Of a DNA stretch of 64,000 nt, positions 15,599 to 64,000 are shown piece after piece. A program made the translations under genes and the position numbers. The DNA is from Thalia democratica (lineage: Eukaryota). The notes beneath the pieces are model-generated. The model had not been told where the DNA came from, did no database searches, and was given only the letters and a program-made list of their open reading frames with translations. Position 1 is the first letter of the stretch; each line of letters starts with the position of its first letter. The stretch lies in NCBI GenBank assembly GCA_965202585.1, contig OZ241826.1, positions 19,282,001 through 19,346,000 of the forward strand, given 5' to 3'.

Positions 15599-16784
15599 TT
15601 GTTAAGTAAGCTTCATGAACAAGTTTTGAAGTTAAGTTTATTAAAGTTTTAAAATTTTTTACCTTGTAGTTCTTATTAAAAGTTAGCAAACATATAATTA
15701 TAAAATTACTTTCTATAAGCTTATTGATTTTATTTTTGTTATATACCACTTAGACAAAACATCATCAAAGCAAGTTTGAAATAAATTGTCCTAAAAATAA
15801 TCAAAATAAAATTTTAAACTAAAGTAGCATGAATCTATAAGTTAAATAAAAACAGTTCACTTGTACTAATTAGTCCTTAAACACAGGCTACCTTAATATA
15901 AAGCACTTTCCTACATACAACTACTACATGGTAGAAGTTTGCTCGCATAAACTTTTTATGACGCATTCTAAGCGCTACAGCGACGTCATGCGTTTTTATT
16001 TCGCGAATTGAATCGTCGATTTTGTCCAAAAATACTTGCTATAAATTAATAACTAATGAAAGTTATTCCATATTTTTATTTTGGTCAAAACTTTGCAGCA
16101 AGCACAAGCTTGTTAAAATTATTCAAGTTTTTAAAAATTCTGACCCTGAATATTTTGTTTGCCTTAAATTAAAATTAATAATTAAACATATTTTTTGAAA
16201 AGTTATTGTTTAGAAATAAAATTTTTATTTTTCTATAAACGTAAAAAATTTAGTATAGAAATTTTGAACTAAATTTAACTAAAGCTTTTTACAAGTAAAT
16301 TAAATTTACTAACTGCATTGGTTATCATGTCTACTTTATTAAGGCACAAAGTTTGTTTAATTATTATTTTATTAACGTTTAAGTTTGGTATTATTCTGTT
16401 ATTAAAAAGTAAATAATTCAACAATTAAAGTTAAGTTGAGTGCTTATAAAAATAATTTATGTAATTAGTTACTAAAAACACAAAAAGTGTTTATTTTTTG
16501 CTTTTAAAAAATGGTTTAATTAGATCGCAATTTTTTGTAAGCAGAAATGGTCCACGTTTGAAAAGCTGATAAAACTGAAGAATATTTAAATTTTTAAATA
16601 AAGTGGTGTTACTGTTTGAGAACTTTAATTTATTACGGAATGTGCAAAATTAATTAGAAACTTTGCTAATTTATTATTATAAAATATCTTAAAAAAGATA
16701 CTCGAAATTTAAAACGTTTAGTAGTTTTTAATACATATAAAGTACTTAAATATTTATTTCTTTAATATACAACAGAAATTGATT

Positions 16785-17483
16785 AAATTTTGTTTACTAG
16801 GCCATGAAGTTTTAGAAACTTGTACAATAAAACTTTACATTTACAAAAATCTTTTAATTTTAATTTGGAATGTAATTACCCTTAAAAGATCAGTACTGTA
16901 ACTTAAAGTTAAATTAAAAAACAGTTCTATGTTGTTACAACAGAAACAAATTTTAATGTTCTCTATTTGTTATTATTATAGTAAGTACTTAATGGGCCAG
17001 ATATTTTTATTGGCGGGCCAAATCTGGCTCTCTGGCCGTTAGCTGCACACTCGTACATTACACAGTTAACTATAGAATTTTTAAAATGTGTAAACAAAAT
17101 AAAAGTATCTTTGTATTATTTTATACTAATTTATTTAATTAATTTCTAAACATGCTGAAGGTCGTAGAAATAAATAAAACACTGTCATAGTAGTTTCTTT
17201 TAGACAGTAGGAATAAATATATAAATTACGATTAGTTTTTGAATGCAGTCAGATTTGGCCCGCCAATAAAATATCTGGCCCATTAAGTATTTACTCTAAT
17301 AATAAAAAATAGAGAACATTAAAATTTTTCTGTTTTAAAAACATAGAACTGCTGTTTAATTTTACTTTAGCTTACAGTATTGCTTTTTTAATGATCACTA
17401 CATTGCAAATTAAAACTAAAAGAGTTTTTGTAAAGTTTTATAGTACAAGTTTCTAAAACTACATGGCCTAGTAAACAAAATTT
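16785..17483. repeat. Long inverted repeat, ~245-bp arms and ~220-bp spacer
   Basis: aaattttgtttactaggccatg...gggccagatatttttattggcgggccaaatct (16785-17025) is the reverse complement of agatttggcccgccaataaaatatctggccc...catggcctagtaaacaaaattt (17251-17483). Roughly 85-90% identity by eye. Confidence 0.9.
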
Positions 17484-19119
17484 ATTAAGTTCTATCGCTA
17501 AAATCATTTTTTTTGTAATCTCTTTACGCTGACTAAAAAAATATGCATTTGTAGCAAAGAAAACATTTTTTTAACACAAATATAAGTATATCATAAGTAT
17601 AAAGTTAGTTACTAGTAGTTTACTGGGTACTGGTTTATTGTTTTTAATTATTTTTATCATAAATAGTAAAAATACAACTGAATGTGTACTATTTATTGTA
17701 AAAAAACTGTTTGGTATAAAATCTGAAGGTTTCTTAAGTTCTTCTTGATTTGCCCATTCAAATCTTTTCGGCTAATGTTTCATGCACTAGTTATTCAAAC
17801 ATTGAGGTTTTGTTTATGCAGCTTCAGACATCAATTTAAGGTTGTATTAGACGTTTTTTTTTTAATATAATAACTAACTAACTCAATGATCGTTATATTT
17901 TGTTTAACAATTAGCAAATCTACTTTCCCCACAAAAAAGGTTGTTTAAAAGTTCTAGATATCCAATAAAAATTCGACGCAACTGTTACGTGTTATCTAGT
18001 TTGTTCGTAATAAAATACTAAATAAAATTATCATTCTAAACAGTTAACAAAGGAATAGTTTTATAAAAGCTATTTACTATAATATTTTTATTGTAGTCTT
18101 CATTACAAAAACGTGAATGCGATTTATATTAAAACCTTGTTTTTCAAACTTCTCATTTAAGTTTTAACAAATATTAAAGCCAGTGTAAAAACCTTTTATT
18201 TACTTACAGTGCAAAGCTCGGTGGTTGTACTCATAGCTTACGTTCAACTAATGCACTGTTAGTAGAAAAAATTTATTTCTTTGTTTTCGAATTTACTGGT
18301 AAGTTACAAAAGCGAAGTTTCTTAGTTTTTTCAAAAGTAACTTGATCCGCATCTGGCAAGTTCTCAGCTTATTATCAATTAGGATCTGGCCGGATCCGGA
18401 TCTTTGTCTTGGTAAATCACTAAATATAGATAGAGAAAGGTTAAATGATTTTAACTTTTAGTAATTTGAATATAATTTATTGGCTTATCACACATTTTTT
18501 ATTTAATACTCGAACTTAGAAAGATTGATATTGGAAAACAAAAATTTAAATTTATACAACGATAAATTAAGTCGTTTTTAAGTACACGTTTTTTATTTTG
18601 TTTTTAAACAAAAGTATATTTAATCCAGTGGAAGTAAAAAACTAAACCAGTTAAGATAGAATGTTTATTAGTTTTTTTAAAATATTTGAAACTAAGTATT
18701 GACTATGAAATAACTGTTTTAAATCCTTAATTATCAATGTTATATTTAGTTTGTTTAGATGTTGCGTATCGCGACCAGACCTATCTCCGGTATATTTTTA
18801 AACCAATCTTATTGTTACATTACTACTTTTGAATAAAGTTTGATTTCAGCTGCATTTTAGATTCAACATTTTTAAACGTAGTAAGTAGAACTTTGTTCAT
18901 TAATTAAACTTATTAACAAGACCGAGTTAATTATGATTTTTTTGTTGTAGACTATGTTTGTTACAAATGTTTGTTTTATTCAAATATTGTATTGTATGTT
19001 TATAATATTCTTACTAATTATAAATAACTATTAATTAATTTTTTATTCCTTTTGAGATGAGACTATTATAGTTATTTCTAAACAATTAGTAGGCAAAATT
19101 TATAAGTACAAGTTTTTTT

Positions 19120-19672
19120 ATTATTTTAGTTATGTTAAGGTTTCTGTTATAAGTTGAAGTTACTACTAAATTAATCAGTATTTATATAATACTTAAGCTT
19201 CATTATTTTATCACTTTTTACAATTATATTTAAAAAAAATGTTTGCATCTGAACTAAATTGTTTTTTGGATACTTAAATTTTAATTTTGTGATTTTTAAA
19301 AACAATAGAATTTTCATACAAAAAACTATAGACATTTTTAATTTGTTTTATAGAAATAAGAATAATTTCTTTGTAATTTTATGAAAAATTTATGTTTATA
19401 AAAGATATAATTTCGTTTGTTAAAAAACAGTTTTTTTTTACAAGCTTTTAAAGTTTTTTAGCTAGAATTAAAATGAATTTGTCTGTTCTATCAACGCTTC
19501 TTGCTTAGCTTTTTAGAAGCTACGACCATTTTGTATTCGTATCCAAAGTAAACTTAAACAAAATGTCATCAGGAACTTTCTGATATTTCTGAGTTTCATA
19601 CAAAACAGAAGACTGACTAAAAGTCAGTACAATAATGTAATTAACAGAAAATATATAAACAGTTAAGTATTA
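19120..19672 (-). repeat. Left arm of inverted repeat flanking Kelch-A (decayed Kelch-B-like sequence)
   Basis: Reverse complement of 21530-22100 (e.g. gtttgcatctgaactaaatt / aatttagttcagatgcaaac; atgtcatcaggaactttctgatatttctga / tcagaaatatcagaaagttcctgatgacat). Confidence 0.9.
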
Positions 19673-20087
19673 AGAAGTGATTAGTTTTTTATTATGATTA
19701 GTTTAGTTTACTTTAGTGATTTTAAAACTTTATGTAGGCAAAAACTACTAAGAAAAGATTTTTATATTAATTTATTTATGTTATAGTTTTAATCGATAAC
19801 CTGATAATAATAAGTCTTTGAATATATTAGTGCGTTTATTGTACAACAGATCATTTTCAAAATAAAAAAACATACGAAAAAGCAAAAAATATAACAAAAA
19901 GAATCCATAGAAAATAAACAAATACATAGGAAATGTTATTAACGTTTATATAAAAAGGTTCTAAACAACTAAATTACTGTGCAAATTTATAAACAACTAT
20001 CGAACGTTACATTTTACGTAAACAAAAGACTGAACAAACATTTGTAAGTCAATATATAAACACATTTATCATTTTCTGTTATGTAGC

Positions 20088-21059
20088 TTATACTTTGTAA
20101 TATTTGATACAAGATGGGCAAATAGAGCTTTGAGTAATTTCAATTGTATTACAACAAATGTTTGACCATTTTTCTTGATCTACATCATACATGTAAATAA
20201 TTGAATTTTTCAAATTATCATAAAAATGATAAAAAACAACTATATTATTTCCAATACTAAAAGCGTCAATCCAACAACTTGTTATAGTTGGTAGTTTTAA
20301 ACTAGATTTTAAGGTTGCAAACTTCCTTGAAAAACTGTCAAAAAGTTCACTGGTTGTGGTACTATACCCACCAATAACAAACATTTTGTTACCCATACTA
20401 ACTGCAGAATGATCATGTCTTTTTTCAATCATATCAGGTAAAAACTTCCATTTATTTTCATGATGATCATATGATTCTACTGATAATAAAATTCCAGTGT
20501 CATTAAAACCACCTGTAATAACAATTTTACCTTGGAAAACTGTACAAGCAGCACTACTTCTATTTACATTCAAATCTGCTACTTTGTTCCTTTTAAAAGT
20601 GTTGATATTATAACTATAACATGAACTAAGATTTGTATCACTGCTTTCAATCCATCCTCCGATTATAAACAGCCTTCTCATGAACGAACTAAGACAATAA
20701 TAAAACCGTTCCTTGAAGTATACATAGTGGTGTTTCCAAGCTTTTGTTTTTTCGGAATAAATTTCAACAGACGTACAAGAGCTATTTAACTTTTTGTAGC
20801 GATTTACGCAATCAAGAAAAGCATATATTTTAGAATTTATAGTTACAGCTTTCAAAAAATTATGTTGTTTCACCGTTGAAGGAAACTCATTTACTTCAAA
20901 ACTAGGTATTTCAATTTCTTCTACTTGATTCACAACTTTACCATTTCTGTCTCTTCCTCCAAAAACAAGAATACTGAAACCTTCTTGGTTACAATATCTA
21001 TTTTCATACAAAACATTTGGTACAAAAGGAGAAGTTAAAAATTTACTCTTTGATGTCAT
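20088..21059 (-). CDS. Kelch-repeat protein A, 323 aa, intact, no BTB/BACK domain
   Basis: Kelch GG/W repeats (LFIIGGW, IVITGGF..SVESYDHHENKW, MFVIGG). Single exon preceded by a tttag acceptor 7 nt upstream of the ATG (exon starts 21066). Confidence 0.9.
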   Translation of the reverse strand: MTSKSKFLTSPFVPNVLYENRYCNQEGFSILVFGGRDRNGKVVNQVEEIEIPSFEVNEFPSTVKQHNFLKAVTINSKIYAFLDCVNRYKKLNSSCTSVEIYSEKTKAWKHHYVYFKERFYYCLSSFMRRLFIIGGWIESSDTNLSSCYSYNINTFKRNKVADLNVNRSSAACTVFQGKIVITGGFNDTGILLSVESYDHHENKWKFLPDMIEKRHDHSAVSMGNKMFVIGGYSTTTSELFDSFSRKFATLKSSLKLPTITSCWIDAFSIGNNIVVFYHFYDNLKNSIIYMYDVDQEKWSNICCNTIEITQSSICPSCIKYYKV

Positions 21060-21529
21060 AGTGAACCTAAATAGAGTGTAGTGCTAAATAGCAGTAAATA
21101 TTTATTAATTTGAAATATAATTGATCGTATAAGAAATAAACTCTGTATATTTATTATCATGTTAGTAATAAATTATTTAGCTTAGAAAATAACCAAATAA
21201 TAAACAAATTACTACATTTAAATAACAATTGATATTTTGTTTTTACAAATACAATAGATATCTGGTTAGATTTTTGTACATAATTTATTACAAAAATAGT
21301 TTTTTTTTTGAATAATTTTTTTGAAAATTTTTGATAGTTTTTTTACATTTATTAATTTTTTTAAATTAATTTTAGATTTTCTATAGCCCTGTTAAAGGGG
21401 GCATTGAGAAAAAATTCAGGAAAACCTTATCTAAACTTATAAACATCATTGGTAATGTAAAGAAACCGTATCTGTAAAATCACTGTTGTAAGCATATGTA
21501 GTTTTATTAAAAAGAAAGTTTTTTTTCAA

Positions 21530-22100
21530 AATACTTAACTGTTTATAAATTTTATGTTACTTATATTATTGTAATGTCTTTTAGTCAGTGTTGTCTTTTG
21601 TATCAAATTCAGAAATATCAGAAAGTTCCTGATGACATTCTGTTTAAGTTTACTTTGGACTAAAATACAAAATGGTTGTAGGTTCTAAAAAGCTAAGAAA
21701 GAAGCGTTGATAGAATAAAGAAAATTCATTTTAATTCTAGCTAAAAAACTTAAAAGATTGTAAAAAAAAAAATGATATACTCATAAAGTACTTTGACACA
21801 AACGAAATTATATATGTTTAAAACATAAATTTTTGATAAGATTTTAGTGTATTCATTTTTATTTCTATAAAAAAAATTAAAAATGTTTATAGTTTTTTGT
21901 ATAAAAATTAAGTTGAGAAGTTTAGTTTTTGTTTTAAAACTCACAAAATTAAAACTTTAGTATCGAAAAGTAATTTAGTTCAGATGCAAACATTTTTTTA
22001 AATATCATTGTAAAAAGAAATAAAATAACGGAATTTAAGTGTTAACTAATAAATGATTAATTTAGTAGTAACTTAAACTTATAATAGAATGTTAACATAA
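21530..22100 (+). pseudogene. Right arm of inverted repeat, decayed Kelch-B-like 5' coding sequence
   Basis: Reads QKVPDDILFKFTLD (cf. Kelch-B SQVTNDVVFKFTFD), then TKLYMF (cf. KELYVF), with many stops. Confidence 0.65.
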
Positions 22101-39723: not shown

Positions 39724-40515
39724 TCATGAATAAATCTTCAAACTAAAAGTTTCATTCTTTGTATCATACAAAATAAACTGATGAGTGTTGTCCGATAAAA
39801 TGTTTAATAACACAACTTTATTTCCAAAACAACAAGCACTAGATTTCCTTACTTCAAACTTTTTAAAATCAATTTCACAGTTAATTGAAGTAAACTTTCT
39901 TGTTATACTGTCAAAAACCTCCCAGGTTTTATTATATTGTACAGCAGTTGCAAACATTTTGTTGCCAATGCTTACTAGAGAATGACCGCATCTTCTTTCG
40001 ATCATGTCAGGTAAACAAGTCCATTTGTTTTCATGATGGTCATATGCTTCAACTGAATTTACTAAACTTAAAAGGCCTGGAGAAAATTTACTGCCTCCAC
40101 TAACAACAATTTTACCTTCAAATATTGTGCATGTTCCGAACAGTCTACTTTTGTTCATTCTTGCTATACCATACCATTTTTTTAGTTTGAAATCGTATCT
40201 GTGACTTAGCTCACCATATCTATTGAACACATATAGTTCTTTTAAAAATAGAAAATTATTAGTCCATCTAAAAATTTCTGGAAAGTTAGAGGAAGAATTT
40301 TGCAAAACTACCCCTTTTGAAGATAGGTAATCACAGTAACTAGCTTTGATGAACATTTTGTCGTTAGAAACAGGCTGGGTGGTTTCTTTATTAAGTAGCA
40401 TAGACTTCTTGACTTTTAAGAAACTTCTATCAAAAGTTAATTTGAACACCAAATCGTTGGTTTCTTGAGAGCAATGTCTAGTTTGGTACAAGATAGACGA
40501 CTGACGACAATACAT
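39724..40515 (-). CDS. Divergent Kelch-repeat protein B, copy 2 (~263 aa)
   Basis: Open frame MYCRQSSILYQTRHCSQ...SLKIYS*. Start placed at 40515, after the ttttcag acceptor at 40527-40529 that is conserved in copy 1. The longer ORF-track start (40611) is a stop codon in copy 1. Confidence 0.8.
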   Translation of the reverse strand: MYCRQSSILYQTRHCSQETNDLVFKLTFDRSFLKVKKSMLLNKETTQPVSNDKMFIKASYCDYLSSKGVVLQNSSSNFPEIFRWTNNFLFLKELYVFNRYGELSHRYDFKLKKWYGIARMNKSRLFGTCTIFEGKIVVSGGSKFSPGLLSLVNSVEAYDHHENKWTCLPDMIERRCGHSLVSIGNKMFATAVQYNKTWEVFDSITRKFTSINCEIDFKKFEVRKSSACCFGNKVVLLNILSDNTHQFILYDTKNETFSLKIYS

Positions 40516-41365
40516 TTTAATTTTAGCTGAAAAACTGTAAGAACTCACAAAATTACATTTACATGTAGTTACCTTTGAAAAATTACTTAATTTTTTATAC
40601 CTATACAACATTTTTAAACTAATAAGAAGGATATTTATTTAAAATACAGACGAATGAAAAATTAAAACTTTTCAATAAAATAATACTAAATTAATACAGT
40701 AACGTGTTGAAGTAATGAAAAATAAGTTAAACAATTAACTACCTAATTAAATATGTCTTCTTAGTAATTTAAGTGTTGTTCAGATATTTATATTTTGAAA
40801 CAAGTTATTTTATACATTAAAAAGTTTTTAAATGTAATAATTAGTAAAATTATAACTCATCTATTTTTTTTTAATGAATTAGCATAAATCTTAAGAATAG
40901 AACTTTGAAAGTAAGAAATTTGACTTAAATATAAGTCAGCTTATAAGTTATAATATATTTTAAGAATCTGTTAGCGTGTAAACATCCTTTTGGAGCTAAA
41001 TACACAAAATATATAAATAACCAAAACCTTACAACCCACTAAGTAAAAAACAATCATATAGTTATTTTTATCAGTGAACAAGCAGTTTTTGTTTCATTTA
41101 GCACAATTAAAAAATACATCAATTAGTAAAAATTTGTACAAAAAATTTACAAATGGTATCGTAAGTGAACAAAAAGTTTTTCTAAATAAAGAAACTAGTT
41201 AAGAGTAGGGGCGTGTCTAGATCTTTATCATTGGAGTTACACAATCTTTTTGTTTAAAAATAAAGTATTTTCTGTAAAAGCTTTTAATAATAGACACTAT
41301 AATATAATATAGTTTTCTACTAGATAACTGTCTAAAATTTCTATAAAAACGTTTAAACTTTAGAC

Positions 41366-58391: not shown

Positions 58392-58879
58392 TGATGTGAT
58401 GAAAACACAAACAGGAATTTTAAAATTATTTCTTATTCTACAAATTTTGTTTGTTTAAAGAAATGATTTTCTATTTTACCTATAGGTTGACATATGTTAT
58501 AACTGAAATATTTTTTATAATCTTATAAGTTAAGTGCTTTACAAGTTATAAATATGTGAGATTATTTCCATAACTGATTTTTTAAATTTTTAGATCTTAT
58601 AGTCTAATAAACTACTATGCTCTTAATCGTTTTGTACTATTTTTAGTTTTATGAAAAACAGAAAATAATTTCTGACACCATAGACAAACTAGTTTTTTTT
58701 TTTTTTGTCTCATCATTAAAATACTTGATAAGTAGTAATAAAAGTATTGTAGTTTATATTTTTATGTTTACACTAACAGCTCGAAAACCTCCGAAAATAA
58801 TGTAAACAAATTAGATTAACAAGTGTTGATGAAATTTTAAAACCTATTATGTAATTTCTGTCGTATATAGTTAATTAGT

Positions 58880-59760
58880 TCTAAAGCCCATTTCAAAGGT
58901 CGGCAGACTAACCATGAAGACCAAATCTAATCCGCGTCTAGTTACTAGCAAAATTTAAATGCTTTTATAACTACTAAAACAAATAATATTATTTTACTTG
59001 TTAGTTAACTAAAAGGATTACATAAATATTATTTATATTAAATACTAAACTGCATGAGGTTTTTTCGTATTGTATTCAGCATAACAGTGACCCGCGTAAA
59101 AATAGTTTTAGATGTCTGGCATAAAAAGTACTTCTAAATATTCTTGCCCGTCACTTATACTAGGGTACAGTTATAAGACATATAAATGTTTACTAGTTTT
59201 TTCGATATCAATAAATTACAAACTCTTTCAATATGATAACACTAAGATACTTCATTAGATTGTAAAATGATTTGTAAATAACTAATTATAAATCGATTAC
59301 TTTTTTAACTTTTTTACCATGCATCAATATAAAGAAGAGGACTCTGTATATACTTTAACTTGTCGATTAAATATGCCGCAAACTTGTTATATAGTTAAAG
59401 GTTTGTCAATGAAGAAATATAGTTTTAACTATACAAGTTGTCAATAAAGACTATTACGTAGAGAAGTTTAACACAAATATACTTTATTTGAAATGTTTAA
59501 GCTGATAATAAAAATACAAACTTTGATTTATTATAATGAAACAGTTCAAATTCTCTAAAGAATTATGATGTTGTAATGCAAAACAGTAAAGTAAACGGGT
59601 GCACGACTATACAAGTTCAAGCAATTTGAGTTTCGACAACTCAAGTTTTAACAATTTTGAATAAATATGAATAATCTCTTATTAAAGTATTGGAATGTTG
59701 CCCTTGTTTTTTTTTATAAAACTAAATTTTCAAAGTTTTATTTTTCTAAAATTCAAATAT
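58880..59760 (-). repeat. Inverted paralog of 28690-29490
   Basis: ccgcgtctagttact, cccgcgtaaaaatagttttagatgtctggcataaaaa and ttgcccttgttttttt match the reverse complement of the 28690-29490 / 45700-46090 sequence. Confidence 0.8.
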
Positions 59761-60076
59761 ATAACAACTTGTCCAAATTATTCAATTCTATAAACTTTCA
59801 ACTTTTCTCAGGGAAATAAATAAATTACTTGTTGATATTATTACTTGTATAAACCTTTTAAAAATAATGTAACTTTTTTTATCAAAAATAATTAGATTAA
59901 AATACAGTTCTTTATTAGAAAACCAACATTTTAAACGAAACTACCCAGGAATTAATTGTTACATAAAATAAAGTAGTGTAATTAAAAACAACATACTTAT
60001 CTTGGTATTTATGTTGTTTTTTATTAGCTATCATCAATAATAAAATAAATTTTAGAGTTTTTGTACACTTTAATGC

Positions 60077-60821
60077 ATTATCTAAGCTCAAGTATCCTTT
60101 CTGTTTAATGCTAATGTACTGAATACTATCTTAAACGTATACAAATTTCATCGTTTTTCATATCAATTTTTTTTATTACAGCTATATTGATAAAATGAAT
60201 TAGAGTCGAATATTACCGAAGTAGATATTGCTACCAAGATGAAGCTGATAACATTCTGTTTAATTTTGATTATGATATATGTAATAAATAATGACTGTAG
60301 CTTTTTAAAAGTAAATATTTAAAACTAAAATCAGGAGATATTAAGACTGATTCTAAAGACGAGTTGTTAAAACTTGCCATGCATTTACTACAAAATTCAC
60401 AAAACACTTATAACTCTTCATGAAAGTACAAATGTATCCCCACTGAAACATCGGAGATATTTTTAAAAAATTTTTTATGCCTTTTGAAGATAAGTAACTG
60501 CAGAAATCAGCTTTGATGAACAACTCGTCTTTACAATCAGTCTTAGTATTTCCTGATTTTAGTTTTAAATATTTCTTTACTTTTAAAAAGCTACAGTTAT
60601 TATTTATTACATATATCATAATCAAAATTAAACAGAATGTTATCAGCTTCATCTTGGTAGCAATATCTACTTCGGTACAAAACATAAATTCGACTCTAAT
60701 TCATTTTATCAATATAGCTGTAATAAAAAAATTGATATGAAAAACGATGAAATTTGTATACGTTTAAGATAGTATTCAGTACATTAGCATTAAACAGAAA
60801 GGATACTTAAGCTTAGATAAT
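60077..60821. repeat. Near-perfect hairpin (arms 60077-60368 and 60519-60821, 150-bp loop) made from a Kelch-B-like pseudogene 5' end
   Basis: Arms differ by only a few substitutions and two small indels. Minus strand reads VLYRSRYCYQDEADNILFNFD and CSFLKVKK...ELFIKADFCSYLSSKG, cf. Kelch-B ILYQTRHCSQ..SFLKVKK..KMFIKASYCDYLSSKG. Confidence 0.92.
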
Positions 60822-61044
60822 TAGTTTCAAAAATTTTAAACTCAATGTTCATGTTAAAAACTATCAGGAAAGAAACTATGATTAAGACTATCAGAAAAAA
60901 AAAGGCTATGATTTGAATACTATACTTACCTAGGTTGATGTTTTAAGTCCGTATTAAAGAAACTATAATACGAAATAAACTTGTTATAACTTAAAATAAA
61001 CTTTTTGTACTAAAATAAATTCAAGCTAAATTATTATATCAATT

Positions 61045-64000
61045 ACATTCAAAAACTAATCGTAATTTATATATTTATTCCTACTGTCTAAAAACAATTA
61101 CTATGACTATATTTTATTTATTTCTGCGACCTTCAACATGTTTAGAAATTAATTAAATAAGTTTGTGTAAAATAGTACAAAGATACTTTTATTTTGTTTA
61201 CACATTTTAAAAAATATATAGTTAACTGTGTAATGTAGGAGTGTGCAGCTAACGACCAGAGAGCCAGATTTGGCCCGCCAATAAAAATATCTGGCCCATT
61301 AAGTGTTTACTATAATAATAAGAAATAGAGAATATTAAAATTTGTTTCTGTTGTAAAAACATAGAACTGTTGTTAACTACATTGCAAATTAAAATTAAAA
61401 GAGTTTTTGTAAAGTTTTATATTACAAGTTTCTAAAACTACATGGCCTAGTAAGACAAAATTTAATCAAGTTCTATCGCTAAAATCTTTTTTTGGTAATC
61501 TCTTTACGCTGACTAGAAAAAATGCGCAATTGTAGCATAGAAAATATTTTTTTTTAACACAAATATAAGTATATCATAAGTATAAAGTTAGTTACTAGTA
61601 GTTTACTGGGTACTGGTTTATTGTTTTTAATTATTTGTATCTTAAATAGTAAAAATACAACTAAATGTGTACTATTTATTGTAAAAAACTGTTTGGTATA
61701 CAATCTGAAGGTTTCTTAAGTTCTACTTGATTTACCCATTCAAATTTTTTCGGCTAGTGTTTCATGCACTCGTTATTCAAACATTGAGATTCTGTTTATG
61801 CAGCTTCAGACATAATCTTTAATTTGTGTTAGACAGTATTTTTATTAAACTTATTAGTTTGTATTAGAGGTTTTTTTAATTCAATATAAAAACTTACTTA
61901 GCTCAACAATCATTATGTTTTGTTTAACAATTAGCAAATCTACTATACCCACAACAAAGTTTGTATAAAAGTTTTAGATATCCTATAAAAATTCGACGCA
62001 ACTGTACCGTGTTATCTAGTTTATTCGTTACATATTACAAAATAAATTTATCTTTCTAAACAGTTAACAAAAGTAAAGTTTTACAAAAGCTATTTACTAT
62101 TATGTTTTTATTGTAGTCTTCATTACAAAAACGTGAATGCGATCTATATTAAAACCTTTTTTTTTAAACTTCTCATTTAAGTTTTAACAAATAGTAAAGC
62201 AAGTGTAAATATCTTTTATTTACTTACAGTGCAAAGCTCGGTGTTTGTACTCATAGCTTACATTTAACTAATGCACTGTTAATAGAAAAAAATGATTTCT
62301 TTGTCTTCGATTTTACTGGAAAATTACAAAAGCGAAGTTTCTTAGTTTTTCAAAAGTAACTTGATCCGCATCTGGCAAATTCTCAGCTTTTTGTAGAATT
62401 AGGATCTGGCCGGATCCGAATCTTTGTCTTGGTAAATCACTAAATATAGATAGAGAAGTCTTAAATGATTTTAACTTTTAGTAATTTGAATATAGTTTTA
62501 TTGGCTTATCACACATTTTTTATTTAATACTCGAACTTAGAAAGACTGTTATTGGAAAACAAAAATTTAAATTTATACAACGATAAATTAAGTCGTTTTT
62601 AAGTACACGTTTTTTATTTTGTTTTTAAACAAAAGTATATTTAATTCAGTGGAAGTAATAAATTAAACCAGTTAAGATAAAATGTATATTAGTTTTTTTT
62701 AAATATTTGAAACTAGGTATTGACTCTGAAATAACTGTTTTAAATCCTTAATTATCAATGTTATATTTAGTTTGTTTAGATGTTGCGTATCGCGACCAGA
62801 CCTATCTCTGGTATATTTTTAAACCAATCTTATTGTTACATTACTACTTTTAAATAAAGTTTGATTTCAGCTGCATTTTAGATTTAACATTTTTTAATGT
62901 AGTAAGTTGAACTTTGTTCATTAATTAGACTTATTAACAAGATCGAGTTAGTTATGAATTTTTTATTGTAGACTATGTTTGTTACAAATGTTTGTTTTAT
63001 TCAAATATTATATTGTATGTTTATAATATTTTTATTAATTATAAATAACTATTAATTAATTTTTTATTCCATTTGAGATGAGACTTTTATAAGGATTGCT
63101 AAACAATTAGTAGGCAAAATTTATAAGTACAAGTATTTTTTATTATTTTAGTTATGTTAAGGTTTCTATTATAAGTTGAAGTTACTACTAAATTAATCAG
63201 TATTTATATAACACTTAAGCTTCATTATTTTATTACTTTTTACAATTATATTTAAAAAAATGTTTGCATCTGAACTAAATTGTTTTTTCGATACTTAAAT
63301 TTTAAGTTTGTTATTTTTAAAAACAATAGAATTTTCATACAAAAAACTATAGACATTTTTAATTTGTTTTATAGAAACAAAAATAATTTCTCTGTAATGT
63401 TATGAAAAATTTATGTTTATAAAAGATATAATTTCGTTTGTTAAAAAACAGTTTTTTTTACAAGCTTTAAAGTTTTTTAGCTAGAATTAAAATGAATTTG
63501 TCTGTTCTATCAACGCTTCTTGTTTAGCTTTTTAGAAGCTACCACGATTTTGTATTCTTATCCAAAGTAAACTTAAACAAAATGTCATCAGGAACTTTCT
63601 GATATTTCTAAATTTCATACAAAACAGAAGACTGACTAAAAGTCATTACAATAATATAATTAACAGAAAATATATAAACAGTTAAGTATTAAGAGGTGAT
63701 TAGTTTTTTATTATGATTAGTTTAGTTTACTTTAGTGATTTTTAAACTTTCTGTAGGCAAAAACTACTAAGAAAATATTTTTATATTAATTTATTTATGT
63801 TATAGTTTTAATCGATTACCTGATAATAATAAGTCTTTGAATATGTTAGTGCGTTTATTGTACAACAGATCATTTTCAAAATAAAAAAACATACGAAAAA
63901 GCAAAAAATCTAACAAAAAGAATCCATAGAAAATAGACAAATACATAGGAAATGTTATTAACGTTTATAAAACAAGGTTCTAAACAACTAAATTATTGTG
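61045..64000. repeat. Segmental duplication unit 3 (partial), close paralog of 17030-19981
   Basis: 61265-64000 is colinear and highly similar to 17251-19981, including the left IR arm (~63140-63695). 61045-61265 is the reverse complement of 17030-17245. Confidence 0.92.

Follow-up and report, generated by a model that had tools for sequence, protein, structure and literature searches.

Inverted duplications produced by fold-back or template switching leave a short single-copy spacer between their arms, according to the fold-back model. Young plant MIRNA genes reportedly formed by inverted duplication of their target genes, and the ampliconic palindromes of the human Y chromosome are said to be kept uniform by gene conversion from arm to arm. 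In Drosophila, hpRNA loci such as hp-CG4068, Nmy/Tmy and the hp-tHMG cluster (PMC10317233; PMC10292708) are marked by siRNAs that depend on Dcr-2 and pair with their targets along their whole length, and by primary transcripts that increase when dcr-2 is mutated (PMC10317233). We analysed an inverted repeat in a 64,000-nucleotide stretch of DNA (hereafter the window; C1:19282001-19346000 of an 801-Mb genome, G+C 20–29%) that invites comparison with all of these. As in the Drosophila loci, a gene fragment has been duplicated in inverted orientation, giving a stem of several hundred base pairs and a short loop close to an amplified, fast-evolving gene family; unlike them, the hairpin has a stem without full complementarity to the paralogs examined. 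It shares with young plant MIRNA genes the model of origin and arms that are homologous to the parent gene beyond a small-RNA site, but whereas those genes retain extended near-identity to the parent, the hairpin is about 63–72% identical to its nearest intact paralogs. Similar to human Y palindromes, its arms resemble each other more closely than would be expected for a structure of its age, with a junction common to diverged copies and ~98% identity between arms within a copy; however, the arms are 0.3 kb around a 150-nt spacer, compared with arms of 9 kb to 1.45 Mb on the Y chromosome, and contain no intact genes. Its inverted arrangement, its short unique centre at which a gene is truncated and the presence of several such junctions in one unstable region are features of fold-back duplications. 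On balance, we consider it likely that the hairpin is an unselected pseudogene palindrome, generated by fold-back or template-switch duplication, converted in the copy in the window (W) and decaying by deletion in a sister copy (P).

The inverted repeat occupies 745 bases (60077-60821) and was recovered both by repeat search, in which it falls into four blocks that are 95–100% complementary, and by alignment of the arms (Table 1). Aligned end to end with the reverse complement of the right arm, the left arm shows 285 matches, 6 substitutions and 13 gap columns, the latter representing three indels of 1, 8 and 4 bp; relative to both the right arm and copy P, the left arm carries 8-bp and 4-bp deletions and a 1-bp insertion. 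Few arm differences at this position were what the original prediction had described, and the alignment bears this out. Pairing continues for three bases beyond the annotated ends, to 60074 on the left and 60824 on the right. The predicted fold of the minus-strand RNA has an energy of −455 kcal/mol, far beyond chance expectation (mean of shuffled sequences −138 ± 5; z = −68), and arms of ~292–303 nt are thus predicted to be capable of forming an extended, near-perfect RNA duplex.

Table 1. Coordinates of the hairpin, its flanks, its sister copy and intact relatives. Positions refer to the window unless prefixed by a sequence name; percentages are substitution divergence between W and P.
Feature	Position	Strand	Description
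Left arm	60077-60368	+	Inverted duplicate of the initial ~296 nt of the gene fragment; the + strand carries the gene sense
Loop	60369-60518	-	150 nt; single-copy continuation of the Kelch exon fragment
Right arm	60519-60821	-	Intron tail, splice acceptor, ATG, then the 5' portion of a BTB-less Kelch exon, pseudogenized
Splice acceptor	AG at 60719-60718	-	TTATTACAG, then C across the boundary; after the intron tail
ATG	60704-60702	-	Start of the fragment, aligning with paralog starts
TAG stop, codon 3	60698-60696	-	Disables the fragment
Most conserved stem patch	60219-60269 (mirror about 60622-60672)	+	Only stretch 84-88% identical to other Kelch paralogs
Segment deleted in P	60566-60827	.	262 bp; bounded in W by TTAGTTT direct repeats
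Sister copy P	C1:18801644-18802131 (L002 about 1500-1988)		Paralogous locus, 540 kb from W
Left flank	59705-60076	+	Shared with P alone; 8.7%
Right flank R	60848-62128	+	In P direct (right of the hairpin) and inverted (left of the hairpin)
W-P divergence, further-left block	58602-59740		8.8%
W-P divergence, left flank	59705-60087		8.7%
W-P divergence, left arm			About 7.4%
W-P divergence, loop			2.7%
W-P divergence, right flank R			1.8-2.5%
Intact relative L007	L007: 762-1583	-	273 aa; begins MNLYKSSVLYQIRHCYQNDADYILFKF
Intact relative in the window	39724-40611	-	BTB-less, single-coding-exon Kelch paralog

Read on the minus strand, the right arm and loop match the 5' portion of a coding exon of the BTB-less Kelch type. 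The fragment is 44–50% identical at the amino-acid level (tblastx) to the starts of intact single-coding-exon Kelch paralogs; BTB-less genes of this kind encode about 270–295 aa here, and several minus-strand ORFs of the window encode Kelch-repeat proteins. Homology with the paralogs spans the entire loop and ends at the start of the left arm, indicating that the gene is cut ~330 nt into its coding exon and runs on as its own reverse complement. This agrees with the original prediction of a Kelch gene 5' end, with splice acceptor, ATG and the motifs named there, that continues into an inverted copy of itself. The description of the gene as truncated holds, but its assignment as Kelch-B-like does not, since a 19-nt segment that the fragment shares with paralogs is absent from the Kelch-B of the window, placing it closer to the L006–L009 type, with its nearest relatives being of the kind seen in L007–L009. 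The fragment is moreover a pseudogene: it is dead because of the TAG at codon 3, further stops (TAA, TAA and TAG after ...FDYDICNK) and a +1 frameshift that separates its first part from SFLKVKK. No open frame bearing Kelch repeats was found in the fragment, in which only the N-terminal region preceding the repeats is present. A 110-aa ORF across the right arm and loop (60353-60685, minus strand) had no Pfam match and is a chance frame picked up past the frameshift.

A decayed copy of the hairpin, P, lies in a paralogous locus. It has the left arm, identical left-arm/loop and loop/right-arm junctions and the same loop, with 4 substitutions in 150 nt. Only ~47–56 nt of its right arm are left, and these join the same right flank directly through the microhomology TTAGTTT. 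This 7-nt motif occurs twice in W, at 60559-60565 and 60821-60827, and once in P, which lacks the intervening 262 bp. The loss from the right arm of P is thus a deletion at microhomology, such as palindromes are expected to undergo. P also carries, where its left arm ends on the outer side, a non-autonomous hAT-like MITE of ~790 bp (L002 711-1499; C1:18800854-18801642) with the TIR CAGGGGTCGGC and an 8-bp TSD (ATCTAAGC/GTCTAAGC); a first look across the genome gave more than 3,800 candidate relatives of this element, with up to 89% identity.

Comparison of the two copies revealed that the palindrome, which the original prediction had taken to be young, predates the W/P duplication, because P shares the junctions, the loop and two derived right-arm substitutions. 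At the two sites in question (alignment columns 289 and 306), the derived base is common to the two right arms, those of W and P, and the base of four outgroup paralogs is retained in both left arms; separation of the arms must thus have preceded the W/P split. Nonetheless, the arms of W differ from each other at 2.1% of sites, compared with about 7.4% between the left arms of W and P, so that arms within W are more alike than left arms across copies that share their inner junctions, the pattern by which gene conversion is recognized. Divergence between W (58602-62236) and the P locus (C1:18792844-18803575) is a mosaic, at 8–9% left of the palindrome centre and 2–3% from the loop rightwards. 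The change in divergence coincides with the boundary between left arm and loop, much as would be expected had the paralog served as template for repair of a central break. This mosaic calls for at least one conversion event, between the loci (right block), between the arms of W, or both. Arm identity is consequently no clock of age, and no single date can be derived from a W–P divergence that is 2–3% in one part and 8–9% in another. Polarized substitutions were also lopsided, with 11 derived in P versus 3 derived in both arms of W; the numbers are small, but the imbalance could hint at slower change in W, which would count against the reading preferred here.

The hairpin lies in a stretch of ~720 kb (C1:18.74-19.46 Mb) in which segmental duplications, both tandem and inverted, are clustered. 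Dozens of occurrences of left-flank and R-like sequences were found in this interval, with R-like sequence present at least 15 times in the cluster, and Kelch 5' ends occur at least 40 times, in the C1 cluster and on C2, C4 and C5. The window itself has further inverted junctions with short spacers, at 16774-18220 and at 19142-19676/21525-22089, and inverted duplication is evidently a frequent mutational outcome in this genome. In W the arm that was duplicated measures no more than about 296 bp, but judging from the arrangement in P the ancestral arm was probably longer and took in flank R, and the inverted R of P may be a remnant of a once larger palindrome. W lacks, at 59705-59740, 6.5 kb that are present in the P locus (C1:18793947-18800509), the inverted R copy included; the sides of this gap overlap by 36 bp, as after deletion between direct repeats. 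Between 52 and 64 kb of the window, the region around the hairpin, we detected no family-matching ORFs, no recognizable exons and no Rfam match.

We propose that in this cluster an inverted duplication, by fold-back or template switching, would have cut off a BTB-less Kelch paralog after ~330 nt of its coding exon. The gene fragment may have been dead beforehand or may have decayed after the duplication. A later duplication of the palindrome and the sequence around it would have produced the loci W and P (C1:18.80 Mb). Deletion between the two 7-nt direct repeats would have removed most of the right arm of P, and the hAT-like MITE would have inserted at the outer limit of the left arm of that copy. 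The arms of W would have been held ~98% alike, most simply by arm-to-arm gene conversion. The hairpin is, in this account, most likely the inert scar of an inverted duplication, with no selected function.

Two other origins were considered for the structure and rejected. Palindromes with short spacers are a known artefact of long reads, and the hairpin could in principle be an assembly fold-back created by chimeric reads. However, 6 substitutions and 3 indels distinguish the arms, a kind of evidence that the original prediction had already invoked against an artefact; the paralogous locus P has the same junctions; and independent short-read contigs assembled from public runs (sample S1) bridge two left-side junctions with 0 differences, crossing from the left flank into the arm at 59963-60119 and from the left arm into the loop at 60286-60446. 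The arm/loop junction is also present, with 3 differences over 161 nt, in a run from a second study that is labelled as a different organism. Short-read contigs collapse both arms (depth is zero at 60210-60270), such that they can confirm unique junctions only; at the two right-hand junctions, contig depth is present and no bridging records are listed. The hairpin is not an assembly artefact, an explanation to which we attach next to no probability. A foldback or MITE-type transposable element would likewise have long terminal inverted repeats around a short centre. This explanation is hardly credible either: the whole-genome search returned only two copies, both in one paralogous context, the ends have no target-site duplication (AATGC/ATTATC at one, versus GATAAT/TAGTTT at the other) and the arms come from a gene.

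Whether the hairpin silences anything turns on its targets and its transcription. Its anatomy would allow it to form long dsRNA, as the original prediction had emphasized, but the close coding paralog that this reading calls for does not exist in the genome: in a search of all 801 Mb, only the hairpin itself and the decayed copy P exceeded 86% identity. Targets had been expected among closer paralogs elsewhere; the other Kelch 5' ends, at least 40 in number, are all at most 72% identical to the hairpin over about 245 nt, with patches of 45–92 nt at 75–88%, and across the coding fragment, identity to the closest intact paralogs is about 63%. Nor did any stem 21-mer have a perfect match among the Kelch paralogs examined, the check that the original prediction had proposed for the arm; the best had 1 mismatch. 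The longest exact matches to the Kelch sequences examined were 16 nt in the stem and 18 nt in the loop, and full complementarity of siRNAs to at least one target gene was not found in comparison with these paralogs. P, which shares exact stretches of 28–68 nt with the hairpin, is the sole sequence with runs of 21 nt or more. Every 21-mer within 1–2 mismatches of the intact-type paralogs L005 and L007–L009 lies in the conserved stem patch, and two more with 2 mismatches, at 60574-60575, match L006. Weak miRNA-like effects through this 50-nt patch are conceivable from the sequence.

A functional hpRNA or endo-siRNA gene, in which transcripts would fold into dsRNA and be processed by Dicer into siRNAs that repress the amplified Kelch family in trans, would fit the architecture of Drosophila hpRNAs, which originate from the genes they target and frequently keep young, amplified families in check (PMC10317233). 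The amplification of the Kelch family here and the near-matching 21-mers of the patch also speak for it. Set against these are the low identity of intact paralogs and the shortness of the exact stem matches; selection did not preserve P, at any rate, since the greater part of one of its arms is gone, and the differences between the arms of W show no G:U bias towards either strand (3/6 are wobble-compatible on the + strand and 1/6 on the - strand). In addition, no public RNA run contains the hairpin, or indeed the intact Kelch-A exon, in an index of 31-mers from assembled contigs, which is blind to 21–23-nt RNAs and loses structured and low-level RNAs, making this a weak negative. Taken together, such a gene is improbable. 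We regard as very doubtful the more specific possibility that a working hpRNA in a non-arthropod animal restrains an amplifying BTB-less Kelch family through the patch despite 1–2 mismatches. If that were true, the arms would be kept alike because pairing matters, and the locus would parallel the Dox/Nmy-type conflict systems of Drosophila simulans. Lacking a role, the hairpin might instead be a proto-hpRNA that is transcribed at some level and diced, with no effective target beyond itself and P. The near-perfect stem of about 290 bp and the exact stretches common to P and the hairpin are consistent with this, as are the Argonaute/Piwi and RNase III-domain genes of the genome: a domain search located Piwi-domain genes at about 8 loci and RNase III domains at C6:54.80 Mb and C1:57.78 Mb, and because the genome encodes both, a transcript through the locus would probably be diced. 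Searches for Dicer_dimer and RdRP gave no match, but neither did their controls. This possibility is nonetheless unlikely, given that public RNA runs offer no trace of the hairpin and that neither a promoter nor a host transcription unit was identified, the surroundings from 52 to 64 kb showing no recognizable exons.

As things stand, the palindrome is an ordinary structural scar. It offers a clean small-scale case in which the identity of palindrome arms misleads on age and in which decay proceeds by microhomology deletion, and it illustrates that near-perfect arms alone are a poor criterion for naming hpRNA genes in a palindrome-rich genome. Should small RNAs be found, the locus would represent an hpRNA outside arthropods that is tied to an amplified gene family.

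Several further observations concern the surroundings of the hairpin and the RNAi-related genes. Elsewhere in the window (16774-18220), a second fold-back junction places an inverted part of R (R 225-653) against a direct copy (R 441-1419) with 84–85% identity, and this junction is itself duplicated in another cluster unit, at C1:18742401-18743856. Inverted repeats with 82–88% identity (19142-19676 and 21525-22089) surround an intact Kelch-A exon (20088-21059, minus strand); the right one contains, at 21629, a 21-mer with 2 mismatches to the conserved patch of the hairpin. The end of flank R (62127-62240) consists of a ~113-bp dispersed repeat with at least 25 copies on many chromosomes, at 78–89% identity. 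The tiny contig C1620, which may be a contaminant or symbiont contig, has (at 499-765) an entire RNase III domain within an open frame of 240 aa, bacterial in size. At C8:51627842-51628750, a full-length Piwi domain lies inside a single uninterrupted open frame of 946 aa, which may represent an intronless Argonaute/Piwi gene; the other Piwi-domain loci are split into exons.
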